A stretch of DNA of 64,000 bases from Hyphochytrium catenoides (GCA_900088475.1 FLMG01000941.1:372001-436000), one strand, 5' to 3'; positions 5,193 through 37,215 are shown, counted from the stretch's first letter. Made by a program: numbers and translations. Notes: generated by a model from the sequence alone, not told the origin.

Positions 5193-6576
5193 TTACTCCA
5201 TGGCCCTGTCTGCCACATGGCAGGCTAGGGCAACCCCTTGGAAGTGATACAGATCTGCTTCCCCGCGCTTGACGGGCACATCTACCGGCATTATGTCAGG
5301 GAGAAAGAAGGTGGAGAAAGAGCCTTCTTCATCTCCATGGGCTGTGGGCTCTGAGACTGCTGTCAGAGCTCTATAAAGAGGACAAGGGAACGTTTCCTTC
5401 ATGTCGCTCTCTTTCCTTTCTATCTCAATGCTTTCGGGGCGGAGCATCAGAGGCGGGAAGTCCTAATAGAAAGACTGAGCGTCAGCATCTGAATGGAGCA
5501 CAGAAGGAGGAACTTGACTAGAAGAGAGAGAAGAGAGAAAGTAGAAGAAGAGCGGCGATGAAGAAATGGGAATGAAAGATAGAGAGAGAAGAGGACGAGA
5601 GATAAAGACAACTCTTTCAAGGACCTTTCAAGGTGAGACTAGACCAAAGTGGCCCACGATAGGCTGGGGAAGAAGTCAGACTTACCGAGGAGATTCGTCC
5701 GCCATTGGGAAGCTGGGACAAGACTCCTTTGGCAGGCTCCCATTGAGCGCCACAGAGCTTCAACCCAGTGAGGATGACGTTGTCAGGGTATAGAGAGGAA
5801 AGAGAGGAAGAAGAGGAGACTTCTCCATCCATGACGCGGCTCACGATGTGGATGTTTTCTATGGGAACACGATGCTTCTTGGCATAGTCGCTACTCAGCG
5901 AAGAGAGAAAGAGAGAAGGATTGAAGAGAGAGAGCGGAGAGATCGTCCTCGGCAGCTCGTAAGTAGAATACCAGCGCTCCAGCAGCTCACAGGAGAGATG
6001 CATTTCTGTGAGCCAGAGACGCAGAGTTCTCGCTTCTCCCTTAGACCGAGTGGTGGAAGAGAAAGAAGTTGAAAGGAGCCAGCCCTCCGGTACCCTATTG
6101 GCAAGAAGAGAGAGTCTGTCATCGTCATTCTCTCCTGTCCAGGAGTTCTCTCCCTTAAGCTCGTTCTTCAACGCCGCAAGAGAGTTAGACAGATGACCCA
6201 GCACCTGGTTATAACGTGCGAGCTGCGCTTCGAAGAAAGAGAAGAGGGCCCCGTCTTCTCCTTCATCCTCTTCTTTCTTTCCTGTCCTTCTCTTACTCAT
6301 CTTGAAAGAGGTTGGCGAGCCACCGCCGCCGTCCGCAATAATAACAGGGCGGACGCGGTTCTAAGAAGAGAAAGGAAACCGTGAGGGAACAGACAGATCG
6401 GAGAACAGATGGCTTCCACAGATTTATACGGAGATATGGACTAGGGAACAAAGGAACAAGAAAGGGAGAGACGGCCACAGAGGGAGATCAAGAGAAGCCA
6501 GAGGACGGAATGAGGTGAGATATGGACAGGTAAGAGTCAGAACAAGAGAGAGGATAGACGAGAGAAGAGAGAGAGT

Positions 6577-6608
<32 letters not shown>

Positions 6609-9600
6609 AAAGAGAGAGAGAGAGAGAGGCACAGAGAGAGACAAAGAGAATGCTTAGCAGCCAGATGTATCGTAACCGCCAAGAGAGACAAGGAAAGAAG
6701 AGAGACACTAATAGGAGAAAGAGAGAGGAAAACAGGGAGAGAGAGGGACACTGAAGGGGCGGCAGCAAATGAGAGAAGATGCATGATCAGAAAGATAATA
6801 GGAAAGAAGATAACAGGGAAGCGAGAGACAGGCAGCTGACCTCAATCTCCGTGATTATTGCGGTTAGACGCTTGTTCTCCTCCTGCCACTGCTCTTCCGC
6901 GCTTCTCTCTGCCGGAGAGAAAGAAGGAAGAAGGAACTGCACACTCTTCCTGAGAGCTCGTCGCGTGCGCAGCTTCTTCTCTTCTCGCCGGCGCTTCTTA
7001 ACGAGCTCTCCCTCTGAAAGGAAAGGAAGAGAAGAGAGGAGCACCGAGGAACCCCCACCGGTGCCCGTTCTCTCCCCTAACAAGGAAGAGGAAGCAAGAG
7101 AACGAGGACCTGAAGCAGGAAGATTGAAAGAAATGGCGCTTTTCAGCAGTGTCTCTTCCAACTCTGTCTGTGCCCTCTCTCCATAGATCTGCTGCAGAAG
7201 CATTCCTCGGAGAGTCTCCCAAGGAAATCTCTCTTTGTCTGTCTCTCTATCTCCCTTTCCTCTCCTCAATTCTTCTACGAGATCTAGAGCCATTATAGCC
7301 TCAGCAACTCCTCCGAGCGGCTGTCTCTCCTGCAAGAAGAGAGAGAGAGAGACAACGCCTCTCTTTGCCCTTTCATGAGAAGAAAGAGACTCTGCTTGCC
7401 ATGAAGACGTGTGCTTCTCCTTGTCCTTTCCTCTGCCTCCTCTGCTTCTGGCACGCACTAGACCTTGTGATTGCTCGAGCAGTAAATAGCGTGTATTCTC
7501 TCTCTGTCGCTCCGCAAAGAAGGCGTCGGACGGAGAGAGAAAGAAGACCTTGAAGCCCGTTCCTTCTGTCCTGGCTCCGTTATCTTCTACCTTCTTTTCT
7601 ACTCCTTCCGCATGGCCCTGCTGCTCTTCCCTCCTTGCTCTGGCCATTATCTGCCTCAGCCTTTCCAAGGTCCACTGACTCCGGACGAGTATCCAGTTGC
7701 CTCTTTCTTTTGCCCTCTTAAAGTCCCGCTCGAGGTCTTTCTCTCCTTCTAACGAAGAAGACGAAGGACATAAGGTGACACTTCTTGCGGCACGTTTGGC
7801 CCAGTGCGCCACCACGTTCAGTGGTTCCTCTCCAAGCTGGGATGGAAGGAGAACGACAACGTTAGAACTGTCATTGGGAGCTCTGGGCGGAGGAAGAGAG
7901 AGAGAGCTGCTTGCTCTCGCTATAGTGTCTTCCTCTTCAGCGAGTGAGAGTCCAAAGTCTTCCTCTATCATATAAAGCAGCTCCGCAGCCAGAAGGTCCT
8001 CTCTCAAGCTCTTGAGAACCATCAGCCGCACACCTCGTCCTAGGTTCTCAAGGTATGGAGGCAAGGAGTGAGCATCTCTTCCATCTGCAACAGGAGATGG
8101 TGACGGAGAAGAGAGCCATCCCGTCCAGACGTCCGGGTGAGCCTCCACGTCTCTCACTAGGCCTTCAATCACCTCAACGCCTCCGTCTACCTCTCTTAGC
8201 GCCTCTTCCAGATGATGCCACTTGGAGGCAAGGATAGCTGAAGGAAGGGGAGAGACAGCTGTGCTATCCTGTTTCTCCTTTCCACCCGCTTCGTCCGCTC
8301 TCGTTCGTCCCAAGAGCAGCCAATGCATCTCACCATCTTTGATCTCTTCTGCCTCTGCAAGATGCAAGAGAGCAACGGCAAGCAACAGGGAGAGTCTCTT
8401 CTCTTCCGTCAGGCCTGTGCTTGCCTCTCTATAGACATCTCTGAATATCTCTTTCCTCAGCCTCCGGACAGACTCCGTGGCTGCGGGCGCACTGTCATGG
8501 CCAGTAGCGTCTTTCTCGGGCATGGAATACCCATTACCGGCCATATGAGCACCCGGATTGGCCTTAGGGATGGCGCTAGCAGCTCTGGCTAGGGCAACGG
8601 CCACGCCCTCGGCCGGCCAGTGATATGCTGAGTCAGACAGAGAGAGGCAAGAAACCGCGCGGAAGAGAAGAGAGATAGCAGTTGCCACCGGGAGATAGTG
8701 CTCTCTCATCTTTAAAAGCTCTGAGAGAGCTTCCTGCCGCTCTGTCAATCGTTGGACGACCGGACCTCGAGAGTGCTGAGGGACGGAACAAGAAGTGAGA
8801 CTACCAGGCAAAGTAAGACAAAAGACAGACAATCAGAGAAGAGAAGCGTGGAGAACAAACAAAGGATGATCGTCGATGCCCGTCCAGCGAGAGCTGACGC
8901 AAGTCTTCTTCTCTCATCCCCATTGTCTCTTAGAAAACCAGGCGGCCTCCTAGCGTCCTCTAGGCAGTGGCAGGCAAAGAGAGAACAGGAGCAGTCGGAG
9001 CGACCACCATAGACAGAAGTCTCTAAGAGTCTTACCTTTATCTCTGACACGCGGATTAACAGCTCATCTGAGTCCAGAACTGTCCCACCGGCCGTGCTGA
9101 GCATCTCAAGCAGCTCTTTCTCTCCATTCTCCAGCCGAGAGGATTCTGCATGGACCTGAAACCTCGCTCCAGCCATTTGCTCCTCGACGTCTGGTTCACA
9201 CACGCGAAGGAGAAGCGAGAGAGATCTCTCTTTCATGCTGGTGACAGAGAGAGCGAAGCTGATGGCCGTAGTATGTCGTCGGAGAAGAGGAGCCAGGGGC
9301 GGATCATGGCGATGTGAGATCAAGAAGAGCTTGAAGGCCGGATCATACTCGATCTCCGCGTCACCAAGCTTCAGAACACTGCGTCCAGCCTGAGGTTGTC
9401 CGCAGGAGATAAAGAGCAGGCATTGGGAAGGAGAGAGAAGAGACAAAGAAGAGATTAACTAGGGTCAGCCATCGGGCCGGGCAAGAGAATAGAGAGAATA
9501 GGTTTAGACTCCACACGATAGACAAGAAGACGAATGACGGTTCTGACAAGCTGAAAGATGAGGGAAAGACGACAAGGGAGAGCTGACGATGAAGAGAAGA

Positions 9601-9680
9601 GAAAGGTAAAGAGGGAAAGAGCGAGGATGGTGGGGGGGAGAGAGAGAGAGAGAGAAAAAGAGAGAGGGAGAGAAAGAGAA

Positions 9681-9712
<32 letters not shown>

Positions 9713-12700
9713 GAGGTAGGAGGAAGATAGAAAAAACACAGAGAGAGAAAAGGAAGAGAAAAAAAAGAGAGAGACAACAGAGAGACAGGGAGACTCCGTT
9801 GAGATAGGGAGCAGATGCCGAAGACCAGAGCCAAGGAAAGACAGAGAGAGGAGCGAGAGACAGCGGAGAAGTAGAGCGAGAAAGGGAACTTGAAGACGTC
9901 AAAGCGAACCATTCCCTAAGGACATTCTCTCTGCTGCCGAGCTCTTTCATTACCTTTCTCTTCAAGAGAGACTTCCGCATCAGAGGTTCGAGGATGGGAT
10001 CGAGCTCTTCAGGCACATTGTCAATGACTAAGACCTTCCCAGTCTTCACTGACTGCTCCACAGCTTTCATCAGCTCCTCACGTTCTGCCCCATGGTCCAC
10101 ACAGTCAACAGCGCCGCTTCCTGTGGGCTGCAAGGCTGTCACCCATTGCAAGGCTTGGTCATGAGGATCCAGCAGGAGAGGCCACTTGGATGACGAGGAA
10201 GAGAGACGATGTAGACAGAGCACTTCGACAGAGATCTCATCAGCAGCAGAGCCGTTCCTCTCCCAGCTTTTCACTATCTCTCTATCTTCCGGAGAGAGAA
10301 GGAAGAGACAGCTCCCTTCCGCTTCTGAGGAATAGGGAACGTCTTGCTCCTTCAGACTTTGAATCCATCCTTGAAGGAGAAGCCGCCGTCTCTCGTGTGG
10401 AAGAGAGGCAGAGAGAGACACAAGGGAAGCGGCAAGAAGAGAGTCTCCCACTGTGGCGTGTTGCCCAGCTGTGAGAGCCTTTGCGCTAGTTTCCCAGGTC
10501 GCCAGATCGTCCTGAAGGAGTTCTACCAGGGCTTTGGCTCGCTTTAGCTTCATGCCTCCCTCGCCTATGGCCATCCGCATGCTTTCAATGGCCCTCTCTC
10601 CCTCTTGATGTCTCTCTCTCAACGACTCTATGCGGACTTCTAAGGCACTAACCTGCGACCTTCGCTTGTTCAACTCTTTCTTTGCCCCTTCGTGCTCACT
10701 CAGAAGCTTTTGCAGCCGCATTCCTTGTGGCATCTTCCCCAAGCGGGCAGAGACGTACTTATGAGCAGTCTGGAGCCAGAGGAAGATTGGAAGCGCGGCA
10801 GAAGAGACACCTTGGACGCTATCGAGCGAGAGGTCTTTCTGACTGAGTATGGCCGTCACGCGGTTGATTGTGACAGCATCTAGCGTCTTGGCAGACGCTC
10901 CGGTCGGCGTCTTTGACGATAGAAGAACAGAAGCCTCACCGGCAGCATGAGAGGAAGAAGATTCAGACTGCCGAGCGCCAGCAAAGGCTCTGAGAGAGGC
11001 GACAAACGCATCTGGACGGCTCAGCATCTCCTTTGCTCCCTCCCAGTCAGACCAGGGCGAGTGCTGGAGAAGGATGCGAATAGCTTCTATCAGCAGCTTG
11101 AGAGAGAGAGGCGGCGGATCGTGAGCTGCGCCCAACTCTATCACATCTGCAGGAGACAGAGACTCTATCTTCTGCACTGCGGCTTCCAAGGAGGGAAGAA
11201 CGCTGTCTGCTTCCAGCTTTGCGTCTTTCTCTGCGACCTCAATCCTCTTGACATCTCCAGCTAAGATTGCCTCTTGCACAGCTACCTCTTCCTTGGCTCT
11301 GGAGAGTTGTCTCTCAACTTCCCCCACTGTCTCTTGAGCTTTTCTCATTGTCTGTTCCTCGTCCGCTATTGCTCTCTGGAAGCCGTCCAGCTCCTCTTGA
11401 AGGCCACGGACCCGCTCTGCAGCTCTCTGCAGCGTAGCGATGGCTCTCTTGACAAGGTTGAGACGCTCATCGACAGCCGTCCTTCTGTTGGACAGAATGC
11501 TAGCGACTGAAGACAAAAGCTCTATGAAAGTGGCGGGAGAGACGTGTGAGAGGGAGAGATCTCCTCTCTCTCCGGGTCGCTTTCTCCTGAATAAGTGCTG
11601 TTGCACGGCTTCTTCCCTGGCTCTTTGATAGATTCTCTGGCAGGTGATGGCCAGACAGCGCCTTATCTCTTCACAGGGAAGATCTAAGTCTTGAAGGTAC
11701 TTCTCTGCTACCGCCTGCACGGCCTGAGAGCTCCAGCCTGGGAACCAGAGGACGGAACCAGTCCTTTCAAGCCACGGCAACTCAGTGGGGAGAGACGCCC
11801 ACTGATCGTCTCTCTTTCTCTTATTTGTCTTCTCTCCATCGCTGTTTCCTGCCTCTTCTGCTGTGGCCAATACGACGCTTCTAACGTCCACAGAGACCGT
11901 GAGAGCGATGTGCAGTCTTTCTTGCAGTCTTCTGCAGAACAGACGCTCTGTCTGTGCCCGCGGCTCCGCTTGATGCCCTTCGTGCTGCACATTGCCCATC
12001 TCCGCTAATATCTCTTCTGCTTCTTCCCCAGAGAACAAGCCTCCGTAGATATCTCTAGAAGAGATTAGACGGTGGAGAACAGCTCTACGCGCTCTGTATT
12101 CCTCCTCCAAGCCGATCGTAGGAACAATGACAAGCGCCTCAATGCCTCGGCTCCCTACTAGCCGTGCGGCATGCTTCAAATGAGAGGAAAAGAGAGACAG
12201 AGAGTCGCAGTCTGAGAGGTCAAAGACTACCTGACCCTCTATGAGCCCAGCAAGACGAGCTGCAGTGCGCTTCCCACTGGATGATGGCCCAAGGAGAAGA
12301 ACATGGGCGCCTGGCTGGCGCAGGAGGCGCATGAGGCCCAGGATCTGAGGCACAGTCTCTGGCAAGAAGAGATAGTCTAGCGGCTGAGCGGTAGGGAGAA
12401 GGGACGATAGACTCGAGGAAGAAGCAGGTGGAGGAGCAGATAAAGAAGCAGCTGAAGAGCTCGTGGCGAGAGCTGCGCAATAGTTATTATACTGTGCGAG
12501 CACTGCCTGCAGTGCCGTGCAGACCTTTGGCAAAGAGCTAAGAGCCACATACTCTCGCCCGTTCTTCCCCTGGCCTATCATCCCTCCTCCAGTCCCAGGC
12601 GTCTGCCAGCTCACAGGGACAGCTCCATACGGAACTGGCTGTGCATCTCCCTCCAGGTGAGGAGAGTTGAGCAGCTGGAACTCTGTCCTTCGAGCTCGCA

Positions 12701-15700
12701 AGATGGCTCTGAACTTCTGCCGGTCATCCTCGTCCGTTAAGGGATCTTGGAAAACACGGCAGATTTCGTGGATCCAGAGCTGCTCGAACTCTGTCCGCGT
12801 GGTGCAGGACTGAGGATCAGCCATAGCGATGCCCTGGAAAATCCTGTTGAGGTCACGAAGAGAGAAGAGATAGTGTGGCTTCGCTGGCGAGGGAACAAAG
12901 GCCTTGACTAGGGCTTGATAGAGGGAGAGCGTCGCGCTGGCAAAGTGATCTTTCAAGGAGCGAATGTCAATGTTGAAGCTCTGCGTCGCAGCTCCGAGGA
13001 GAGAGGAAGATATGAGGAGTTGCGTCCCTTCTTCCTCCTGAGAAAGCACAAAGAGGACCGAAAAGTGACGCGCGAGACGGAGATCTATGTCCTTTCTTGG
13101 CCGCTGCCCTCGGGCTCCACCTTCCTGCGCACAGAGAGAGTGACAGGTATCTCCAGCAACAACGAACGAGCAGCCTGTAAGCTCTTTCCTGGACTGCTGC
13201 TGAAGGTCATACAGTGCAGACTGCTCGACGAGCTGTCTCAGGAGCTCCAAAGGGCGGTGGATGCCTTGAGAGCTCTCCATCGCCATGTGAAGATCATCCA
13301 CGAAGATCATCGCTGCCTTTTTCCCTGCGGCAGGGACGAGCTTTTGAGAGCCTTTCTTCTCTAGATGTCCCTCGATACTGCGCTGTAGATCACTGCTGAG
13401 CGCTCGCCCAGCCACGCTGAGGACGGTAGGAGACGCCCAAGAGCGGGAGTTAGAGCTGGAATATAGAGCGTGCTCGACTGTCATTGTCTTAGCGGTTGCC
13501 GCGCCGCCTGCGAGGAAGACAGGGAAGCCGCCCGCTAGCAGTGTCTCGATGAGGAAGGAATGCCTGGTCACGCTGATGGTCGGGACCAGTAGTCGAGAGA
13601 GAGAAGAGTTCAAGAGTCCGTCGTCTCCCGCCAGGGAAGAAAGAGAAGAAAGAGAAGGAAGCTTCCAGGGGACGAACTCCAAGGTGTTCTCGTCTAGAGC
13701 AAAGTCATAGAGGCTCCAACTGGCTGAGGAAGAAGGAAAAGCTGCCTCTTCAAAGACCAACTTGCTCAGCTTCTCTCTCAAAAAGTTGTTGAAGGCTTTT
13801 CTCCTGCTGGCAGAGAGAATGACAGAGCCAAAGGACCCAACGACGGCAAAGAGAAAGACCTTGGCGATCTTCTGCGTCTCTCTTTCTTTCTCTCCTCGGC
13901 CGCCGGCCTCTTCTCCCGCACCAACGAGAGCCTTTCTCGCCTTCCAGAGGGCAGCAAAAAGCCTACAAAGGCTGTCTACCAGGCTAAGTGCGGACAAGTG
14001 CAGAGCAATATCGTCTCGTGTGGCCTGGAAATAGTCCAGAAGAGGCTGCAGGTACTCGCCAAAGAGCTTGCGTAAGGATTCCTGCTGGACAGCGGTAGAA
14101 AGAGAGGCAAAGTCTCTCTTCAGCCAGAGATCCACTAGGTCCCAGGGAGTGATGAGGTCAGAAGGGACGTAGACGATAGCTAAACGACTGAGAAGAGAAG
14201 GAGAAGCGGCGTGTAGATCCGTGCTTTCAAAGAGAAAACGGAGATCCGAAGGGAGAGAGAGACGATGGAAGTTAGGGAGAGACAGAGCATTCTCTTGGTC
14301 AAGGCTGGTCTCTAACGGTTCCACCCAGGACGAGTCAATGTTCCCATCGCATACTATCCATCGGCTCTCTTCTCCGCTGGTGGGAGCTTTGGCCTGGCGT
14401 ATGAAGAGAGAGAGAAGGCCGTCTCCCCAGTGGCCAGTGTCTCTCTTCACTTCCCCATACAATTGACTCATAGACAGAGTCTGCGGATAAAGAATCTCGG
14501 AGCGGATCTTCTTTGGTCTTCCCATTCTGAACGAAGAGGATGAAGGAGAGAGTGGCGGAGGATGCGCAGCTGGAGAAGAGGAATGAGAGGGAGAGCCCGA
14601 GGACGTGGTAGAGTTGATGGAAGAGCGCCGCTGCTGCTGTTGGAGTGCTGTCAGGGAGTCTCTCAACGTTTTCCAGAGCTGACTCTTCCCGCTGGCTGGG
14701 CTGCCAATGATTGCCACTCCTGTGCGGCTCTTCACTGCCTCGTAGAGACGGAGCAGCATCTTGAGAAACGCAGGAGAGAGAGAGAGATGCTCTCTCTCCA
14801 AGAGACTCTTTGATGCCGTTTCCACCTGAGGGAAAGGGAAGAAGGACGTAGGTGTGGAGGAGGGAGAGAGAGAAGGGATAGAAGAGAACCGCGAGGAATC
14901 TCCTGCTGCTCTTTCTCCCTCTTTTCCGTCCTGAGAGAGAGGAAGAGTCACCTGGAAGATCTCAGTCAGTAGCTTGTCAATGACGTGCAGCTCCTCCTTG
15001 TTGATGAGTTGAGAAGAGAGGACTTCTCTCGCCGCCATCGCGATGAGCTCTGGCTCTTTCAGGCGATGTGCACCGCCGCCTCCTTCTCCTTCTGCTCCGC
15101 CTCCGCCAGCCAGCTTTAAATCTGCCGCTCGGTGAAGTATCGCTGTCAGGCACCGGAGATTGGCCCCTCCTCTGCCCAGCATATGGGAGGCAGGAGAGAG
15201 AGAACAAGAAGAGAGAGAGAGGACCGCAAGTCTCTCCTGACAAAGGCGAGAGAAGGCAGAAAGCTTAGCTGAGAGAGCCTTAGCCTTCGTGAACCCTGCA
15301 CAGAGGAGCGACGCTTCACAGATGACTGCAGTGTCTGGATGCATCATAGCTACAGGTCGGAGAGAGCCAAGCAAAGCAGCAGGAAGCTGCAGTCGCCCCG
15401 GGAAAGCGTCTCTTTCTCTCTCTCCCTTTCCGTCCAAACGAAAGGTTCCTATCACTTGATGCTCCAGGCTAATGGGCACGTCGACGCCCATCAGCATTGC
15501 TGTCTTCTGCCCTGTAAATCGAGCAAGTCTAAGGCTTGCAAGCTGCTCTCCAAGAAGAGAGAGAGAGAGAGCGCTTAACCTTTGCATCTCATCGAGACAC
15601 AGCCAGGCTCCAGACTGCGCGGCACCTCTTAGGAGACGAGAGAGAAGCTCCCCGTCAAGAGAGGAGGAACAAGACGCAACGAGAGAGAAACTGCCTAACG

Positions 15701-18700
15701 TTCGAGCTAACTCGCGGACCGTCTCTGTCTTCCCACATCCTGAGGGTCCACACAGGGCTGCCCCTGCATAATTATGAAAGGAGGCTGTCAGGTTGAGCCA
15801 GCACCGGACTGTGAGAGGCGTGATAGCCAGGCGAGACGCGGCCCCAACGTACTCATAGCCATAGTTCAGCAAGGCCACGCCCTGCCTGGCTACGCATTCT
15901 TCTCTCTCTGCGCTCCAGCCAAAGCGGAGCTGCTGCTGCCAAACGAAGCTGGACAGCGAGAGAGGTTCAGCATCTTTCTCCTCGGTTCCTTGTCTCAAGA
16001 GAGCCTCTAGAACTTCTCTTTCATGCAGCTGTTGAGTCAGCAATCTCTCCATTAGGCGGCGCTGTAGGCTAGGCAAAGATAAGGCATGACTCTGAAGCAT
16101 CACGGAGAGCCCTTCAAGCTCCTTGACAAGCCTTGCTAGTTGCTCTTTGAGGCCTTTGGAGGGCATAGAGCTGGCCAACGTAGCCTCCACGCTTGCTGTC
16201 CAGCCTAACTGCAGCACTGTGGTCAGCACCTGGGCTGGATAGTGTTGATATTGCTGCTGGAGCCACTCTCTGGCGCTCGTTTGACTGCCGAGTAGCTCAG
16301 TCACCGCACCTTTCATCAGCTTCTGAAGAGAGCTCTTCACAATCAATTCTAGGCCTTTCAACCACTCTTCGAGGTTTCCTCGCAGCTTCATTGGCTTCAG
16401 AAGGGGAAGTCTCTCCCCTTCCAAGCTGACAACCCCATGAAGATCTGTAACACTTCTCTCAGGACCAAAGTCCAGGGCTGAGAGGCTGATGAAGCATTTC
16501 TGCAAGTGTCCGACCATGGCCTGAGGCATCCTAGGCTGTGCCACAAGGTCCAGCAGCTCTTCGTCAGAAAGGAAGAAGAGACGGGGAAAGCCCGTTCGTT
16601 TGGCTTCTAAGTAATCGTCAAGGGCCTTCCAGACCTCCTGCAGCTGCTGCTTGCACGTTCGTAGGACCTCCCTAAGCTTTGCATTGCCTGCTGCCCCTAG
16701 CACTGAAGGATTCTCTCTCGTTCTCCGCATGATGGACTTATACTCGCCGTCCACCGTGGAGAAGAGCTTGGCGGTCGCTGGCAATTGTCTCTGAATGTCA
16801 GAGGTGGAGAAGATGCCTTCTAGCTGTCCCCAGTCTTTCTGACAGGCCCGCCAGTCGCTCAATGTCTCTCTACAAGCTAAAAGAGACTGCTGAAGCTGCT
16901 CCACACGTGTGCGGATGTGCCGAATGTACTTGGAGCTCAACAGAGAGCTCAAAGTCATCAGCGCATCCTCCAGTCGTGCTGCCATCTCCTCTGTCCCAAC
17001 GAGAGCAAAGATGTCCTTGGACTCCTTATGAGGAGCGAGCTGGAACTCTTGGGCTGCCCAGGTCTGCTCCAGCTCTCGCAGAGTCTCCTGAAGTACATGC
17101 TCTTGCTTGGCATTCGCAGCTATCTCCGCCAGCAAGGCCGCCTGTGCCGTCACATTCCTCTGGAGAAGCGCATCAACCTTCAATTGTCGGCTGTCATCAA
17201 AGCTCAGTCCAGCCACGCCTTGGATCTCTATCCAATGCTGAGGCTTCAGATACTCAGTCCTTAGATCCCTTAGAAGAGGGACAATGGGCCGGAACTCGTC
17301 CAGAGAGAACTTCAGCTGCGCCAGCACAGCGTTGCCGGGAAGACCAATAGCTGCAGCCTGACAGACCTCTCCATAGGTGTCCAGCTCCTTCTGTGTCCAC
17401 TCGAGGTCAACTTCTGGCAGAGTGAGCTCTAGAAGGTACGCACGTTGTCTATGCCAGGCTTCAGAGCCTGTCCAAAGCCGAAGCTTCAGCTCTAAGTCTT
17501 TCTCCGTGTCAGTGAGGCTCTCATCGTCTGACTGAGAAAGGCCTAGCTCTGTCTCGAAGTAATGGAGCTGCGTCGCGCGCTTTCTGATACTTTCCACCAC
17601 TGTTCTCTGCTCGTGAAGGTACCTGAGTACCTCCGCAGGCGTGTGACGGACGTCCACCTCTCTCACGATTGCGTTGTCTAATCTCTCTCTAACGGCCACG
17701 ATCTGCTTCTTCAAGCTCTGGATCTCAGCTTCTACTTCGTCTCTAAAGCGCTTGGTATCTTCCTCATTGTGTCCTTCTGCTAGCTCGACGTTGGTCTCTA
17801 ATGTGTTCATCTCCTCGGTCACCATGATGAGCAGCGCCTGTTCCTCGTCAGGCACAGCCCACTGCTGGCTTGCCATAATCTTTGCCGCTGCGTCCACCTT
17901 CTCCTGTCTAGCCTTCAGTGCTGGCAAAGACTCTATCACCTTCGCACAGGTCTGCTTCTTATGGACAAAGTCCTCAGCGTTCGTGGGAGAGCCAGTGACG
18001 ATGGGCAGAAGCCTCGCGAGCTCATCCAACAGACTCTGTCCGTGGTGGCGGATGAGCTGAGGAAGAAAGTCCTGAAGGGCTTGCAGGCAGTGAGAAGGGC
18101 TTGGAAAGAGGATACTACGCAGTCTCGCGGTGTCAACCAGAAAGAGACCCACGATAGACCGCTGGGGAATGCCTGCAAAGCGCGTCACCTGCTCCTTATA
18201 CTTAGCTATGAGCTCCTCGATCTCTGAGAGCTCAATGTCCTGCAAGCGGCTTGTCAGCGTCTGCACGAAGCGCAGATTCTCCTGGTAGAGATCTCTAAAA
18301 GGAGAGAGACGCTCTAAGAACTGCTCAATGTCCCCATAGCCCGCCTTTAAACCGGAGAAGATGGCCTCCACCGCCTCTTCGACCTTCTCGTTTGCCAGCA
18401 GGTCGTCCACACCGTCTCTCTTGTCTCTCTGCTGGCCCTGCGCTTCCTCAGCCGAGAGGAAAGGTACAGAGCTCCGCGGTAAGGCATAGTCCGCGAACAT
18501 CTCATGGCCCAACATTTTCTGCGGAGCACGGACGACGCGTAGGGCAGAGGTTAGCGTGGCTCTAACACGCTCTTGGAGCTCTTCGAAAGACGGGAGAATG
18601 GAGAATTTTCCTCCGCCTTCGAAGGAGAGAAAGACAGCCTCTACGCCTAAGTAAGCGCTTGTTGTCGCGTTTTGGCCTCCTCTGCCATGGGAAGAGCCCT

Positions 18701-21394
18701 TGGACCGAGCTGTTCTTTCTCCTCCTCCTGCTGCTAATGCAGCAGCTGCTGCCGCTGCAGCTGCCCTAGTAGAGGCAGAGGCAAAGCTAGACGATAATCC
18801 TCTCGCTCCTGCTGCTCCTGCTGCTGCTTTCTCCTCAATGACAGGGATCTCCCCTTTCGCATTGACAATCTTAGAAAAATCCCAGAGAGACACAAGGGCA
18901 AGATCCTGAAGCGCGTCGTCCATAAGGAAGTCTGAGAGCTGCAAGAAGTTTGTCAGACGCTGACATTCATTCCTTAGCGCTGCTTTCTCCATGAAGGTCA
19001 TCTTCTGGTCAGCATTGATCTGGGATTGTCTCAGGAAAGAGTCAATAACCTCATCGAAAGCAGCTCTGAGGATTGTACGGGCCGTTGCGCTGAACTGGCT
19101 GACAGTGGAGGTCATGGCAAGCTGCAACTCTTCTTGTTGGGCGCAGAAGCCCTCAAGGCTAAGAGTCAAGCCCTGTTCAAGCTTGACGATCCTTAGCTTG
19201 AGAGCGTTGAGACAGAGCTGGCGAAGATGGTGGAGTGCCTTGCGTAGGGAAGGGTGGAAGAGAAAGAGATTCTTCTCTAAGGAGAGAGAGGCATTGGACC
19301 GCTTGGCATGGATCACGCTCCAGCGCCAGACTTTGAAGACCTTCCAAGGAAGGTAGTTCCTGAAGAAGCGGATCTGAAGGAATGAGGAACAGGATGACGA
19401 GGGACAAGGGAGGGTTCAGCGACAGAAGTAATGACGAGATTGCGGTGCGATGGAGGTAGGGGGCAAACAGATAAAGCAAAAGGCCACGCCGGGTGCCAGA
19501 GAGAGAGAGACAGAGAGGAGGAATGAGAGAGACAAAAGAGAGAAGANNNNNNNNNNNNNNNNNNNNNNNNNNNNNNNNNNNNNNNNNNNNNNNNNNNNNN
19601 NNNNNNNNNNNNNNNNNNNNNAAGGGAGAGGGCGAGCGGCAGAACAGGAACAAAGGAGTGTACGAAAGCAAATCCAAGCACATTCAAGATGATGGCGGGT
19701 ATAACGTGAGAATAGTAGGGATCTCTCAAATCCCCACTCTCTTTGAGGCAAGGTCTTCCTCTCTCTTTCTCTTTTTTACTCTCTCTTCTTTACTCTCTCT
19801 CTCTCTCTCTTCACGTTCAAGCTTGCCTTCTTTCTTGTCTCAGAAAACTAGCTCTGAAGGCCCGCTCTTACCTTTCTGATGCGGTTAAAGTAGATGAACT
19901 CTTTCTCCCACCGGCCAAGCGGCGTGTACTCTGTTGCTCCTCGGTGAAAGTGCGTCATTCCTTGGCTACTTAGCGTGTAATAGTCACCAGGGTCCGCCTA
20001 GGAACAGCGAGACAGAGTGAGCAAGAGATGGCCGGAAGAGGGGGAAGAGACAGAAGAGAAGAGAAGAGAAGAGAGAGCGAGAGAGAGGTAGTGAGGACCA
20101 AGAGCAAGGCGAGACCTCGGGTGGGAGAGACACCCAAAGATGGTAGCAAAGAGATGAAGAGGCTAGAAAAGAGATATGAGGAGGACGGTCAGATGAGACA
20201 GAAGGAGATGAGAAAAGGATGAAGCAGAAGCTGTGACATTATATCTCTAAAAAAGGAAGAAGTGTGAGGAACTAGAGAACAACCAAGAGAGAGAGAGAGA
20301 CAGAGAGGTGAGCAAAGAAAGTATTGACGCAAAGTCGGACGTCATTAGACACTAGCAGAGACATATGAACCCTCGATGAAGAAGAGGGAGAGGCGGGAGA
20401 GAGAGAGCAGAGGGAGAGGAAGAGGAAGAAAGAGAGAGACACAGGGAGAGACAGAGACGAGCGAAAGAAAGCGTGAGAGAAAAGAGAGAAGGGCAGAGAG
20501 AGAGAGAGATGGGATCACTCTCGCACATCATCATGAGAGACAATCTCAAGGTCATAGACAGAGCCGTTCGTCCTCTTTCGGAGGTAGAAGAATCCGCCTG
20601 CGGCTAGTGTCCGATGATGCACTTCCTTGAGACAGAGCGATGCTCCAAAGGTTCCGAGCGGGCCACTCATCTCTCGACTGGAAGCCAAGTTTCCCGATGA
20701 TTCTCTGCCTATTGAGCGCGAGCAGGAGAGACCAGAACGATGTCAGATGAGATAAGAATGGAGAGGCAAGGGTGTCGACTAGAGAGAGAGAGGGAGAAGA
20801 GAGGAAAGAGAGACACAACACGGAGAGACAGTGGGGGAGAGAGAGAAGACAGCAAGGAGAACAATAATAGCGGCAGAGACAGAAGAGACATACAAGAAGC
20901 AGGAGAGACAGACAGAAGGCGTGGATGGTAAGTCAGGGACAAAAATAAGGAAACAGAGCATGAAAGAGACTGAGAATGATGGAGAAATCTCGCTTAAGAA
21001 ACCCAGCGTCATGCACTGAGACATCTACTACTGTTTTACCGCGTGGCGAGAGAAGAGGCAAGCTCAGCGAGGAGCGGCGATGCTTCTCAGAATTCTTCTT
21101 CTTTGCCTCTTGCGGTCTCGAGGCATCTCTGACCACCTGAAGCTTCTCTTGTCCTTCTTTCTCCCTCTCATTCCCGGCAGGCAACTTTCCTCCCACGAGG
21201 GTGGGATCCGTCCGGCGTGGAGAAGAAGCCTTTATGAGATGTTTTCTCTCATCTGTCTTCGCCCTGGGTCCGATTGGGTTAGCAGAGAAGTACATTCGGC
21301 CCATGAGCATTGCATGGTTGCTGAGCTGCGTCTCTCCCTCTCTCTCTTCCAACTGATCCATCTCACTGCGAGTGTCATCGTCCTCCGCCTCCAT
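5193..21394 (-). CDS. Axonemal inner-arm dynein heavy chain, DNAH6-like, divergent (~4,440 aa)
   Basis: Exons (minus): 21394-21040, 20708-20527, 19997-19872, 19373-9954, 9389-9036, 8775-6841, 6360-5686, 5462-5193, all in phase (13,317 nt). N-terminal DYYTLSSQGMTHF...W..EFIYF...IRFFRNYLPWKVFKVW is DNAH6-like; linker FPRLFFLSDEELL; YGYEYVG..RLAITPLT; P-loops GPSGCGKT, GSPASGKS, GGAATAKT, GPSSSGKR; stalk coiled coil; C-terminal CPLYR. The true start may lie in further exons up to ~22100. Confidence 0.9.
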
Positions 21395-28042: not shown

Positions 28043-29122
28043 ATGATGTTAGAAGGACAACAACGGACAATGATGGGCTCTGCTAGTCCCTCTTCTCTCC
28101 ACAGGGAACTGCAGATTGCAGCGATGACGAAGACGCGAGACACTCACCTCATGTCTCGCTTATCATCATCCACTCCCTTCTCCTCTTCTGCTGCCATTGT
28201 GGCCTGTAGCCCGCGTTCTGCTGCTCCAAATTCTGAGTCCCCCGTGGCGAAAATTGTCATCGGAGGTGGGCTGACACTGGTCTTTGAATTCTTCATTGGA
28301 CATCCACTAGAGTTTACAAAGATCGGCAAACAGACGACCAACCTGCCTTATCCTCGAGTCATCAGCAACATTATCAGCAAGAAGGGCTTTGTCGGCATCT
28401 GGGATGGCTTCTTCCCCTGGGGTGCAGTGCAATCTCTAGCTAAGGGGGCCGTCTTTGGGGGTGCTCACGCCTTCACCAGGAAAGCTCTGGCACCTTATGT
28501 TCAAAAGGGCTACATCTCTGATGGCACCTCGCAGGTTATTTCAGGAGGAATAGGAGGCGGCTTTCAGGGCTTTGTTCTTAGCCCTACACTGCTGTTGAAG
28601 ACTCGTGTCATGACGGATCCGGTCTTCCGTAAGGACATGACAATGCTCCAGACTTCAGTCAAGGCAACGACGGTGGGAATGAGAGTCATCAAAGAGGAAG
28701 GCGTGAGAGCGCTCATGAAGGGAAGTGGCATGTTTGCTTTCAAGAGAGTGCTTGACTGGTCTTCTCGCTTCTACTTCTCCGTCTGGACGGAGAATATCCT
28801 TTATAAACGACATGACAAGCATAGGAAGCTCACTGTCGGACAACAGACGACCGCCTCTCTTATCGGAGGTACCTTCAGCGCTGTGTTGACCATTCCTTTC
28901 GACGTTATGGTCTCTCAGATTCAGCAGACAGCCAAAGCGGGGCAGAAAGTCAGCGTTATTGGGCTACTGAAGGAGCAGACCGGGAGCGCAGGTGGCATGA
29001 AGAGCACGCTTGAGTTTGTAACACGGGGTTTCGTTCCTAGATTGGCGCATGTGGCACTCACAACGGCGCTACTAAAGACTGCGTCCAGCGCTGTCTATGA
29101 TATGTATCAAGACTCACAGTAA
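28043..29122 (+). CDS. Mitochondrial carrier (SLC25), YHM2-like citrate/oxoglutarate carrier, intronless
   Basis: Three carrier repeats with Px[DE]xx[KR]-type signatures (HPLEFTK, SPTLLLKTR, IPFDVMVSQ); GFFPWGAVQSLAKGAVF resembles Yhm2 GLIPWAWIEASTKGAVL. Start codon uncertain (28043 or 28151). AATAAA at ~29130. Confidence 0.85.
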   Translation: MMLEGQQRTMMGSASPSSLHRELQIAAMTKTRDTHLMSRLSSSTPFSSSAAIVACSPRSAAPNSESPVAKIVIGGGLTLVFEFFIGHPLEFTKIGKQTTNLPYPRVISNIISKKGFVGIWDGFFPWGAVQSLAKGAVFGGAHAFTRKALAPYVQKGYISDGTSQVISGGIGGGFQGFVLSPTLLLKTRVMTDPVFRKDMTMLQTSVKATTVGMRVIKEEGVRALMKGSGMFAFKRVLDWSSRFYFSVWTENILYKRHDKHRKLTVGQQTTASLIGGTFSAVLTIPFDVMVSQIQQTAKAGQKVSVIGLLKEQTGSAGGMKSTLEFVTRGFVPRLAHVALTTALLKTASSAVYDMYQDSQ

Positions 29123-32712: not shown

Positions 32713-33945
32713 GCGGTGGTCCCATTGCAAGGACTCAATTCGGCTCGGCAGAAACCATAGATCTATTCAGGGCCACCTTGTCTTCAAACCCCTAGTCTTT
32801 GAAATTCTCTATGTCTCAAGGAAAGGAAAGTGGTTCCTTAGACAGGTTGAATATATAATCTATGGATAAGACAGGTGGGACTCTGGTGTGGAAGGTCCAT
32901 CATCATTCTCGGCTGTGCAGGTGCAAAAGCTCAAAGCTCTTTCGATAAGATCTTCATCATCCCTCATCAGAGATTTATTTATAAAGAGTGGCGCCAGGAG
33001 GTCAGCGGCCGCTCCGCTCATCAACAGCAGAGCTGAGAGGAAGAGACGGAAGGGGACCCTGCCTCGCTTCTCCCAGGAGCAGCTGGCAGCAGCAGCTGCT
33101 GAGAGGAAAGAGGAAAACCAAGCGTGAGAGAGAGGGAGAGACTTCGTCGAGGAGGAACAGACAAGGTCCAGTCCTTCCTATTACCTAGTTCCTAGCGACT
33201 GCCTTTCTGGTTAAACCTTAGACCGATCGTACGGCTTCTTCTTCCTTCGCGGGCCCCCCCCCCACCCGCCCACCCGGCCAACCCTAACCTTCTCGTGCTG
33301 CCTGCTGCGGGCGCCGAACGAGGAGTCTGATCTTGCAGGTGGTGGGAGATCTCCTCACTAAATCCATGTGCTCCCTACCTGCTTGCCTATCTGATGCCCC
33401 CTTCTTCTTTACCCTCTTACGCGGCATCCCTAGCCTTTTCCCTTACACTACTACTGCTGCCCTCTGCGGACTCAGGATCGGACGCTGTAGCAGTCCTCCC
33501 TGCTGCTGCTGCTGTCTGGGAAATAAGTAACCCTTGCAGCCAGAGAGCATCTTTTCCGCGGCGTGTGGAGCAACCCGGCCGCCAGTCAACAACTGGATAA
33601 TAGTTTCCGCTGACATAAAGCAAAGATTCTACTTTGAAGCTCGTTTTTGGGCCAAGGCTGTGGCGCCAGCATCACAGCTCAAGGCGGATCCAAAGGTTAT
33701 GATTAGTCCTTGTTCCTTTTGTGATTTTCCTTAGTAGGGGAGAATTGCCAGCCTCGTGCCGTTCAACCGGTCTTTGCTCTCCATCCAAGCTCTCCGCAAG
33801 CAGCAACGCGCTCTCTTTGTTGCCGGTTGCGCAGTGTTTTCTATTCGGGTCTCATCGTTGCTTTGTCATCTCTCCTGCTGCCTGTTCGACCACCCTTCCC
33901 ATCGCTCTGCTTCTCCCTTCGTGGCTGTTCTTGTCAGCAGGTATC

Positions 33946-35298
33946 ATGAACGACAAAGATAGCAACCGCGGATACGTTTACGATGTCGTCATCGTGGGTG
34001 GAAGCTTCGCTGGACTAAGCGCCGCACTCATACTGGCGCGGTGCAACCGGCACGTCCTGGTTGTCGACGAGTCCGGCTCCTCTGGCGAGACGTCCAGGAA
34101 CTATGCGGCCAAGATAGTCCACGGCTTTCTCACGCACGTGGATCCCACATCTCCCAAAGACCTGCTGGCCCGGGGAAAGAGGCAAATCTCTGCCTATCCG
34201 AATGTCCAGTTCATGACAGGGTTGGCCGTGAAAGTCTGCAAGGCTCAGATGGAGATAGAGAGAGTCGATGCTACGGAGGAGCTGGAGAGGAGACTGTCTT
34301 CTGAAGGAAGGCCAGAGGCGAGAACAACTTCCGCGGGAGAGGAAATGCGTCTGCGTAAGCCATTCTTTATGTGCAAGATGAGAGATCTTCTAACTCAGCC
34401 AGGCGAGAACGACGCGTGGAATGGCCCGAGGGATGATAAAACAAAGGACGAGAAGAGCAAAGTAGCGTCAGGAGAGGGAGAAGAGAAAGTTATTATTCAC
34501 AATGGCTTCGAGGTGAACGTTGTAGCTGGGGAAAGATCTGGCGCCCAGACAAAGGCAGAGGACAGCGGCGACAAGGAAGCAAAGGAGGAGCGCTACGAAG
34601 TGTACACGCGCAAAGTCATCTTCGCTACGGGCGTCAAGGATGTTCTCCCTACTGAGATTCCAAAGTTTGACCAGTTTTACGGCAATGGCGTGTGGCATTG
34701 CCCTGTATGTGACGCTTTTGGTTATATTAACGAGCCAGTGGGCGTTTATGGGACGGACGACGCGGCGGAGGAAGCAGCGCAGATGGCCTATGAGATCCTT
34801 ATTTGGACCAATAACGTGACTCTCTTCACGAATGGGATGACAGAGCTGTCGGAGAAGGTCCAAAATATGTTGAGACGCCGTCCAGAGATTCGAGTGATAT
34901 ATTCCAAGATTATAGACTTGATCGGCGACGAGGAAGAGGGCGAAGTGAAACAGGATGGAAAGGAGAGTCAACTCAAAAAGGTCGTCGTAGAAGACAGACT
35001 GGACGACGGCTCAACTACCTGGGAGGCCATTCCTTGTCACGCTCTCTTCTTCAGCACAGGGAGAGTCCAGGCACCTACGATAGACTATGAGAAGCTGGGC
35101 TGCAAGCTGGACAAGAAGGGCGACATCGAGTGCCTTGAAACAGGGACTTGCAAGGGCGTGGAGGGACTTTATTTCGCTGGGAACGCTACTACGCGAAGGC
35201 TAATGATGGTGGCTAGTGCGGTGGGAAATGGGGCGACGGTAGGCTTTCAGGCCAACACTGACCTCATGCATGAGGACATTGAAGAAGAGATGAAGTGA
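33946..35298 (+). CDS. FAD-dependent pyridine nucleotide-disulfide oxidoreductase, thioredoxin-reductase fold, intronless CDS
   Basis: YDVVIVGGSFAGLSAAL (FAD Rossmann), RN...HGFLT, IFATGVKD, GVWHCPVCD (CxxC), VEGLYFAGNA. ATG at 33946 follows a pyrimidine-rich CAG acceptor at 33940, so the upstream part of ORF 33721 is probably a 5'-UTR intron. Confidence 0.9.
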   Translation: MNDKDSNRGYVYDVVIVGGSFAGLSAALILARCNRHVLVVDESGSSGETSRNYAAKIVHGFLTHVDPTSPKDLLARGKRQISAYPNVQFMTGLAVKVCKAQMEIERVDATEELERRLSSEGRPEARTTSAGEEMRLRKPFFMCKMRDLLTQPGENDAWNGPRDDKTKDEKSKVASGEGEEKVIIHNGFEVNVVAGERSGAQTKAEDSGDKEAKEERYEVYTRKVIFATGVKDVLPTEIPKFDQFYGNGVWHCPVCDAFGYINEPVGVYGTDDAAEEAAQMAYEILIWTNNVTLFTNGMTELSEKVQNMLRRRPEIRVIYSKIIDLIGDEEEGEVKQDGKESQLKKVVVEDRLDDGSTTWEAIPCHALFFSTGRVQAPTIDYEKLGCKLDKKGDIECLETGTCKGVEGLYFAGNATTRRLMMVASAVGNGATVGFQANTDLMHEDIEEEMK

Positions 35299-37215
35299 CG
35301 GTGGTCTTTCTCTCCGTTCTCTCCCCCGGGCGAGTCACCTCTCACTCGTTTCTCCGTCTTCAATGGCTCATATCCACTATGGCACACCTTACTGTTCTGA
35401 TTATCTTGTCCCTACCAAACCCTCCTACGCCTATGGTTCTTCCTTTCTCTGTCTCATCCTCTTCTCCTCGATCCCTCACTTCCTGCGTCTACTTTCCTGG
35501 TGTGACGCTCTGAATGTCATCCTCCTTAATCCTCTTTACCCTCTTTCTCGCTCTCTTTCTCTTCGTTTGGAGGATGACACACGATTAGCCTCCGGCTCCT
35601 GCGCTTCTTTCTCGTGGAGTCAGTAGGAGGATAGAGAGATAGCCTGTACCACTTTACAACGTCTTTGATAATGGGAATAGGCTTTCCTTCCTCTCAACTA
35701 ATGACCTCCCTTCACCAAGCTGTGCACCAGGATACGGCACTACCCGCACCTCGACAAGTACTCCGGAGTAAGCGCCGGTCTCGGCCAAGGAATATAAGAC
35801 TATCAGAGCCGGGGAAAAGAATCTAAATGCCCTTGCAACCTATTCAAAGAAGAGAACGTCTTTCTCAGTCATGGTCCTTTCATTGGGTCCAGCATCTTTC
35901 TTTAAACGTTGTCAGACCTCTGTCCACTAGCATCTCACTCAGCTCGATTCCACCACTGCTCTCTCTATCAGCAGCCCTTGCCTATAGTTCTATCGACCCT
36001 GTCCCTTCCTCTTCTTCCCTACCTAGTCAGCTTCATTCACCACATACAGCAGATCTACTCTTCCTCTCTCTCTCTTCTCCCAGTCAATGCTCAGGACTCT
36101 CTTCTCTCTCTCTCTTGGTCCATCTGTTTCCCCGGGGGTCGATGTTCCTGGAGCCCAAGTCATAACAAAGCTAAGCAAAGCAAGCAGCTCCCAATTACGG
36201 TCCGTTACCGAATGAAAGATTCAGTAATGAAAAACACAGCTTTCTTTTCAGGGCCATTAAATACTAAGAGTGGGAGCAGCATGAAATGTTTCACTACGTC
36301 GTCCTGCAAAAAAAAGGTCTTTCCCTTCCCCTTCTGTTTCTCTCTGTCTCTTTTTCGCTCTCTCTCTCTCTCACACACACTCTTTCTCTCTCTTTTTCTC
36401 TCTTTCTCTTTCTCTCTCTCTCTCACACTCTTACTCTCTCTCTCACACTCTCTCTGCCCCTCCCTCCCTCCCCCTCTCTTCCATTTTTTGTCTCTCCAGT
36501 CTCTGTCTTCCGTGCCTTTCACCTCTCTCTCGCTCTCTCTTCACGCCAATAGCGCGCTGCTCCTCTTCTTCCTTCCTCTTCTCTTCGGTCACTCTTACAT
36601 TGCCTGACGCTTCTTCATCGAAGAGAGGAGCGGCGTTCCTTCTTCTTCTTGGCCTCTACCCTGCCTCTTCACATTCTCTTCTTGTCTTCTGTGCTACTTT
36701 CGTCATGGACATCTGAACTCTCAACCTCCTCTCGCTTCTTCTTCTGATGGGCTGAAACCCCCACGACGTCTGACAGGGCTTGGAGGCCTGCCAGTCAGCC
36801 GGACGGTGGTACTTTCCCATCTCGACCCTGGCCGGTCGATGGAGTGGCTGTTAGGAAGCCATTGGCTTGCCAGCAATCTGTCTCAACTGAGAGATTCTGC
36901 CACTGCTTTCTCATATCTATTATCTATCGAGTACATCTCTCACCAACTCTTTCTCTTCACAATATAGCTTTAGCCCCCCTCTCTCTCTCTCTACCTGCAT
37001 AGTACTCACGTCCCCTCGTCGGTCTCGTCCACCTCTGAGGATTCAACCTCTTAGCATCTCGTTGCCACTTTCTCTGAACTGTGCGTAGGGGCGGAGACCG
37101 TATGGGACGTCGATAGGAAGAAGGGCTGATCATCTCTATCAACTCTCCTCGCCTCCTCTTCTTCACTCTTTCTCTCTCTCTCTCTCTCTCTCATTCTGAA
37201 CCCTTAGTGATCACA

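Follow-up and report, generated by a model that had tools for sequence, protein, structure and literature searches.

The window analysed here is a 64,000-nucleotide stretch of the genome of Hyphochytrium catenoides (GCA_900088475.1 FLMG01000941.1:372001-436000), a stramenopile related to the oomycetes, and its minus strand carries, from ~20,740 to 5,193 in window numbering, a multi-exon dynein heavy chain gene with an intact reading frame, an ordinary tail and a strongly diverged motor. Pfam domains were found in the order expected for a heavy chain: DHC_N2 (E-value 1e-99), AAA_6 (1e-57), AAA_7 (3e-34), AAA_8 (1.5e-15), AAA_9 (9.5e-17 and 1.8e-20), the lid domains and Dynein_C (4.9e-24). The AAA_6 match covers only profile positions 1-205 out of 327, and the MT (stalk), Dynein_heavy (AAA6) and AAA_lid_11 models, all strong in the orthologue from Phytophthora capsici, have no match in the window protein. 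The best matches among solved structures are DNAH6-class chains, Chlamydomonas 8glv_Fm and human 8j07_g5 (908-913 bits), and scores outside the class are lower (DNAH2, 742 bits; DNAH1, 739 bits); these scores and the trees given below bear out the DNAH6-like assignment made in a first-pass annotation of the stretch. DNAH6 is class DHC9-alpha / IAD5 in the Kollmar nomenclature, together with Chlamydomonas DHC7 (dynein g) (PMC5100056). Judged from its sequence, the gene is a real, complete, single-headed inner-arm dynein heavy chain of the DNAH6 class (DHC9, IAD5).

The exons were mapped by running several reference proteins through tblastn and then examining each junction, and they were aligned separately, as fragments. 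The mapped elements, from the 5' end of the gene, are as follows.

20518-20742, minus strand: open stretch containing exon B, which ends at 20527 before a GTGAGA donor and encodes a conserved N-terminal tail motif (...GGFFYLRKRTNGSVYDLEIVSHDD)
19997-19872, minus strand: exon C, 42 tail codons (ADPGDYYTLS...FNRIRK), with a TAG acceptor and a GTAAGA donor, located by tblastn to four reference proteins
19871-19374, minus strand: intron between exons C and D, holding a gap of Ns (19547-19621) with C+T-rich low-complexity flanks
19373-9954, minus strand: exon D, 3,140 codons, running from the greater part of the tail through the linker, AAA1-AAA4 and the stalk and microtubule-binding domain (MTBD) into the first half of AAA5
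9389-9036, minus strand: exon E, 118 codons, the second half of AAA5 (Pfam AAA_9, 1.8e-20), with a CAG acceptor and a GTAAGA donor
8775-6841, minus strand: exon F, 645 codons, the AAA5 extension and AAA6, strongly diverged
6360-5686, minus strand: exon G, 225 codons, the C-terminal domain (Pfam Dynein_C, 4.9e-24), with a TAG acceptor and a GTAAGT donor
5462-5193, minus strand: exon H, 89 codons and the stop, the C-terminal end (FPCPLYRA...QGVALACHV)

Exon B is matched at E 6e-13 by a profile hidden Markov model (HMM) of the N-termini of the relatives, and tblastn puts residues 139-216 of the 4,080-residue P. capsici protein P0249 there, while exon H matches the YxCPxYKT...RGxALLC sequence conserved at the end of the reference proteins. 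In exon F the motifs ISLGQGQG, NCHLA, YGGRVTD and PE.FG.H.NA are each altered; its AAA6 part is colinear with P0249 residues 3196-3749 at 22% identity (tblastn, E 7e-07) and has no Pfam match. The first-pass annotation had called AAA6 and the C-terminus barely recognisable, which agrees with the missing Pfam match for AAA6, but AAA6 is still colinear at ~21-28% identity and Dynein_C recognises the C-terminal domain at the E-value listed above. Every one of exons C-H is flanked by AG and GT, in phase 0 and with zero internal stops, and exons B-H together span residues 134-4080 of P0249 free of gaps. The same annotation had counted an intact frame of ~4,440 codons with clean splice sites; the frame is indeed intact with AG/GT borders, but homology supports ~4,330 codons. 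The first exon that it had proposed at 21394-20933 has no homology support from the profile HMM of the relatives' N-termini, because the first ~130 residues of the relatives are unconserved.

The gap at 19547-19621 leaves the reading frame untouched, since it is intronic and the references continue from exon C to exon D without losing a residue (P0001 316/316, P0249 248/246, P0101 279/278, P0100 262/261), and a tiny exon hidden in its unread sequence may be regarded as a formal possibility. All five mapped introns are phase 0 and 223-564 bases long (19374-19871, 9390-9953, 8776-9035, 6361-6840 and 5463-5685). In three of the five, the coding strand is 72-79% C+T and contains long CT microsatellites, and the same low-complexity sequence flanks the gap, which suggests that assembly gaps fall at such repeats.

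Relatives were sought in four ways: 5.8 billion proteins were searched by word index, 1.84 billion cluster representatives were searched exhaustively by HMMER with the linker and AAA1, the tail alone was used in a word search, and metagenome loci were scanned. None of the four returned anything above 40% identity. The nearest proteins are from Phytophthora capsici (40%), Aphanomyces euteiches (37%, annotated as dynein heavy chain 6) and Achlya hypogyna (35%), together with mammalian DNAH6 (35%). The closest relatives are all canonical at AAA1, with GPAGTGKTE, (L/F)DEFNR, TMNPG and HYD(F/Y)G(L/M)R, so the changes described below are not common to known motile dyneins, a point that we checked as the annotation had proposed, and the protein libraries searched contain no orthologue that carries them. 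In trees computed with the posterior mean site frequency (PMSF) model, the window protein lies inside the DNAH6-class clade of the stramenopiles, alveolates and Rhizaria (SAR) with support of 98-100, on a terminal branch of 2.6-3.6 substitutions/site compared with a median of ~0.6. The tree of the tail and linker places it as sister to the Phytophthora and Aphanomyces type-A orthologues (Shimodaira-Hasegawa-like approximate likelihood ratio test, SH-aLRT, 94), within a clade of support 98 that takes in labyrinthulomycetes.

In the first tree the window protein paired with another long branch, the metagenomic protein P0116. We put this pairing down to long-branch attraction, since the identity between the two is only 29% and by tail and linker P0116 belongs to type B and the window protein to type A. 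P0116 itself (4,261 amino acids; ENA contigs, 18-40 kb) spans a DNAH6-class chain in full and forms a long branch among the type-B stramenopile proteins. Its Walker B has DD in place of DE and its HYDFG reads SCDFG, so it too is a degenerate heavy chain, as yet unstudied.

The divergence of the window protein is concentrated in the motor. On a fixed topology we divided, for each domain, the branch leading from the shared node to the window protein by the branch leading to P. capsici. The ratio is 1.4 for the tail (range 1.2-1.4), 6.9 for the linker, 18.6 for AAA1 large, 29 for AAA1 small, 4.7 for AAA2, 4.6 for AAA3, 15 for AAA4, 15 for the stalk/MTBD, 10-12 for AAA5, 9.5 for AAA6 and 6.8 for the C-terminal domain, so that the motor domains have evolved ~5 to 29 times faster than in the P. 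capsici orthologue. Identity gives the same picture: the tail is 31% identical to P0249 over its whole length, where canonical orthologues among themselves reach 18-31%, and the ring domains stand at a third to half of the normal level. The contrast between a tail near consensus and a diverged motor, noted at first sight, is thus borne out by both per-domain branch lengths and identity. At positions invariant in ten reference proteins ranging from animals to oomycetes, 331/624 are kept and 293/624 changed, and the share kept falls from 79% in the linker and 62% in AAA1 large to 38% in AAA1 small, 36% in AAA4 and 35% in AAA6.

This divergence is accompanied by a protected reading frame. The in-frame exons C-H run through ~4,260 codons without a stop, against 3.3-5 stops per 100 codons in the two alternative frames of exons D and F (3.7-5 in exon D), and every motor segment shows the coding periodicity of GC content at the three codon positions (GC1 high, GC2 low, GC3 high), which is absent from the introns. 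The protein has 19 insertions of at least 8 residues, all of them in frame. Together with the canonical splice sites and the ~3-fold differences in divergence among the ring domains, the frame, the indels and the periodicity argue against a freely decaying pseudogene, in agreement with the annotation, and they suggest that the protein fold and the AAA1 nucleotide pocket still matter.

For the AAA1 site, we aligned 265 dynein AAA1 regions taken from the matches of two large protein searches and scored six catalytic positions. All six are present in 223 of the 265, and the window protein lacks exactly one of them, the sensor-I Asn, which is present in 245/265. The relevant segments, the last of which lies in AAA2, are listed here.

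15749-15726, minus strand: AAA1 Walker A, GPSGCGKT, with Lys and Thr retained, fitting GxxGxGK[ST]
15677-15666, minus strand: ASCS of AAA1, FNCS in the consensus, present in the DNA
15596-15576, minus strand: AAA1 Walker B, LDEMQRL (WLCLDE), with Asp and Glu retained and the Asn of DEFNR changed to Gln
15449-15393, minus strand: AAA1 sensor-I strand and loop, GTFRLDGKGERERDAFPGR, without Asn, with Pro lost and Tyr changed to Phe
15188-15135, minus strand: sensor-II region of the AAA1 small domain, SHMLGRGGANLRCLTAIL, replacing HYDFG(L/M)RAVKSVL
14207-14169, minus strand: 'SRC'-type arginine-finger segment of AAA2, ASPSLLSRLAIVY, with Arg retained (SPSLLSRL vs SPATVSRC)

The sensor-I loop carries a 9-residue insertion at 15440-15414, and the 22-residue span around strand beta4, QVIGTFRLDGKGERERDAFPGR, contains zero Asn, on which three independent alignments concur; the loss of the sensor-I Asn read by eye in the annotation withstood this check. 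At sensor II, HYDFGMR had been described as gone. The motif is replaced, but its His still aligns and so does its Arg, to a candidate sensor-II Arg (NLRCLTAIL), with a 4-residue insertion between them (SHMLGRGGANLR). In an AlphaFold2 model (35-sequence alignment; mean predicted local distance difference test, pLDDT, 77), strand beta4 stops at the Arg of GTFR, the insertion has pLDDT <50, and a helix is predicted to begin just before the candidate sensor-II Arg. Since the dynein alignment underlies both the model and its Foldseek match to dynein AAA1-AAA2, they speak for compatibility of the fold only. The AAA1 sensor-I and lid insertions contain no in-frame GT..AG pair and are therefore not introns, and no alternative frame at the locus encodes the canonical AAA1 motifs. 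The motif substitutions listed by the first-pass annotation in AAA1, AAA2 and AAA3 were each confirmed in the DNA at the places given, although one is hardly a departure, because the Leu of LDE, set there against FDEFNRI, is common to the closest canonical relatives. From these residues, ATP binding at AAA1 is likely, and we infer that ATP hydrolysis at this site may have been lost.

The changes extend to other ring domains and to the MTBD.

14327-14289, minus strand: AAA2 motif WVEPLETSLDQEN, the altered form listed in the annotation, present
13508-13485, minus strand: AAA3 Walker A, GGAATAKT, with the Gly before Lys changed to Ala
13151-13089, minus strand: AAA3 sensor-I segment, with the conserved PPGGGRN swapped for a longer unrelated loop
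12290-12264, minus strand: AAA4 Walker A, GPSSSGKRT, with Gly-Lys retained
10982-10896, minus strand: 29-residue insertion in the MTBD

Downstream in AAA4, Walker B is changed from FLFTD to VIVPT with loss of the Asp, and in the first helix of the MTBD the basic residues of E(V/I)K.F.KPP are replaced (ELGAAHDPP). The MTBD region is colinear and retains its landmarks (DPPP..LIEAIRILL, DWEGAK, VSSAALPIFLW), yet the Pfam MT model, which scores 8.6e-53 in the P. capsici orthologue, does not match it. The description of the chain as motor-degenerate is fitting in that the whole ring is accelerated, but it is overstated for AAA1, where five of the six catalytic positions and the arginine finger supplied by AAA2 are retained.

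Compared with the canonical DNAH6 class, represented by P. capsici P0249 and P0097 and A. euteiches P0098, the window protein has the same colinear architecture from tail to C-terminus and an ordinary tail conservation, but it is only 33-40% identical even to the closest of them, its motor branch is 5-29 times longer, and it differs by the missing sensor-I Asn, the altered AAA3 P-loop and AAA4 Walker B, and the 19 insertions. A combination of this kind has been described before: orphan and new dynein classes (DHC10-17, of which 14-16 are oomycete-only) keep ancestral tails while their motors are highly diverged, and such chains were inferred to dock where their tails specify (Kollmar 2016; PMC5100056). 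The window protein shares with these orphan dyneins the tail of an ancient class, the diverged motor, the intact gene and a docking site inferred from the tail, but its motor still groups with the parent class DHC9.

A second parallel is DNAHX, a non-motile heavy chain seen by cryo-electron microscopy with an ATP-bound head held permanently in the pre-powerstroke state (preprint, PMC11785096). Its Walker B is intact, the Pro and Tyr of its sensor-I loop, regarded as a 'backdoor' for phosphate release, are replaced, its Walker A Thr is changed to Val and its sensor-II Arg to Lys, and it has insertions in the motor, some of them in the stalk/MTBD (PMC11785096). It derives from the outer-arm alpha chain, is confined to animals and reported absent from protists, and belongs to a two-headed complex (PMC11785096). 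The window protein shares the altered sensor-I loop, the kept Walker B and the insertions in the motor and the stalk/MTBD, a resemblance in possible working rather than membership, but it is instead a single-headed DNAH6-class chain of a stramenopile that retains the Thr and the candidate Arg but lacks the sensor-I Asn itself. Among the large 'DNAH5/8-like' proteins of echinoderms, hemichordates and nemerteans returned by the word-index search (P0061, P0070, P0074, P0075, P0077 and P0081), several carry Lys, Gln or Thr where the sensor-II Arg would stand, and most of the six also lack the other canonical AAA1 motifs, which fits the DNAHX subfamily (PMC11785096).

Other degenerate chains are more remote. 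DNHD1 and DNAH14 likewise combine an intact gene with degenerate AAA1 motifs, but DNHD1 lacks 3-6 of the six AAA1 residues and is distant (E 1e-24 to 1e-45), and DNAH14 is a vertebrate-specific, fast-evolving sister of DNAH6 with Walker B altered in some mammalian copies; neither groups with the window protein. The Aphanomyces proteins P0168 and P0285 represent an oomycete chain derived from the DNAH6 class with, like the window protein, a conserved tail and linker and a degenerate AAA1. They belong, however, to a type-B clade, as sister to an Achlya protein, have lost 5/6 of the AAA1 residues (KMTAEG), are 27% identical to the window protein and share none of its specific changes. Both (from A. 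euteiches and A. cochlioides) are annotated as 'dynein heavy chain linker domain-containing protein' with ~1,720 residues, probably a truncated gene model.

Taking these data together, we put the probability at roughly 0.55 that the gene encodes an axoneme-docked, ATP-binding head with poor ATP turnover and weak microtubule binding that is poorly motile or non-motile. Because the tail is under ordinary constraint, it has most likely retained light-chain binding and docking at an inner-arm site on the doublet microtubule. The motor ring would be folded and protected in its reading frame with much of the constraint of a working motor gone. At AAA1, the nucleotide-binding residues and the catalytic base are kept, with the sensor-I Asn and the Pro/Tyr loop lost and a 9-residue insertion in their place; the AAA3 P-loop and the AAA4 Walker B are probably impaired, and the MTBD, with fewer basic residues and its 29-residue insertion, may bind microtubules less well. 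ATP would then be bound at AAA1 with slow or no hydrolysis or phosphate release, and the head would act as a weak or non-motile structural or regulatory element and not as a force generator. By analogy with DNAHX and the orphan dyneins of Kollmar, such a structural or docking role is plausible. Several observations weigh against this interpretation. With Walker A and B, the arginine finger and the candidate sensor-II Arg intact, ATP turnover at AAA1 could persist, and the role of sensor I might have passed to an Asp or Arg of the remodelled loop. AAA1 large is the least diverged ring domain, with a branch of 1.7 substitutions/site compared with 5.6 for AAA6, which suggests that the nucleotide site still matters. 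In addition, alignment error at 20-30% identity inflates branch lengths.

An alternative is an active motor with retuned kinetics, an adaptive change for instance to one of two dissimilar flagella or to one zone of the axoneme, in which another residue of the remodelled loop replaces the sensor-I Asn. In its favour, the arginine finger is present along with five of the six AAA1 residues, among them those of Walker A and B and the candidate sensor-II Arg, AAA1 large keeps 62% of the otherwise invariant positions, the frame and the coding periodicity are maintained, and Kollmar reads the orphan dyneins as having new force-production characteristics (PMC5100056). We nevertheless consider it rather unlikely. 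The dyneins outside the 245/265 that have the sensor-I Asn are mostly DNHD1, DNAHX-like or low-quality entries, and AAA3, AAA4, the MTBD, AAA6 and the C-terminal domain are changed at once, which looks like general relaxation and not like the tuning of one property.

Another alternative is a decaying redundant paralogue, silent or barely expressed, that so far lacks a disabling mutation. The motor-wide loss of otherwise invariant residues, changes that are found in no relative and a first exon and promoter that were not located are all compatible with this, but neutral sequence at 2-5 substitutions/site would show many stops and frameshifts, whereas ~4,260 codons run without a stop, each of the 19 long insertions preserves the frame and every mapped splice site is canonical. 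The tail, moreover, evolves at a normal, constrained rate, and the ~3-fold spread of divergence among the ring domains is contrary to neutrality, so we regard decay as quite improbable. Least probable by far, to the point that we give it hardly any weight, is an artefact in which mis-assembly, unspliced in-frame introns or frameshifts imitate divergence in an ordinary DNAH6 gene. The scaffold does contain N gaps and abundant C+T-rich low-complexity sequence, and several insertions resemble translated intron in their high content of Ser, Pro and Leu, a few of them with a possible in-frame GT..AG. The canonical AAA1 motifs, on the other hand, occur in no other frame, the AAA1 insertions have no GT..AG solution, the assembly gap is intronic, and with 293 invariant columns substituted the divergence is not a matter of insertions alone.

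The dynein gene has the following neighbouring open reading frames in the window.

28043-29122, plus strand: mitochondrial carrier
33721-35298, plus strand: pyridine-nucleotide-disulphide oxidoreductase-like flavoprotein
37207-38592, plus strand: leucine-rich repeat (LRR) protein
42591-43679, plus strand: RWP-RK domain protein

Dyneins with a normal tail and a decayed motor are already catalogued (Kollmar 2016; PMC5100056), and the window gene is a lineage-specific addition to them. It offers a clean protist example of such heads in the single-headed DNAH6 class. Its constraint is graded in a measurable way, from a normal tail through a partly kept AAA1 site to relaxed AAA4, MTBD and AAA6, and this grading reveals which regions of a dynein are still required once force production is dispensable. 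We also entertain, tentatively, the more specific idea that the protein is an inner-arm counterpart of the animal DNAHX that evolved independently in a protist, with a DNAH6-class head that docks normally and is locked or nearly inert; if this is true, the non-motor head would serve as a structural or regulatory element, perhaps in one of two dissimilar flagella or in one axonemal zone. Should the protein occur in flagella, 'dead' dynein heads would have arisen convergently outside animals and in the inner arm, and the gene would provide a test case for the loss of sensor I with the Walker motifs intact.

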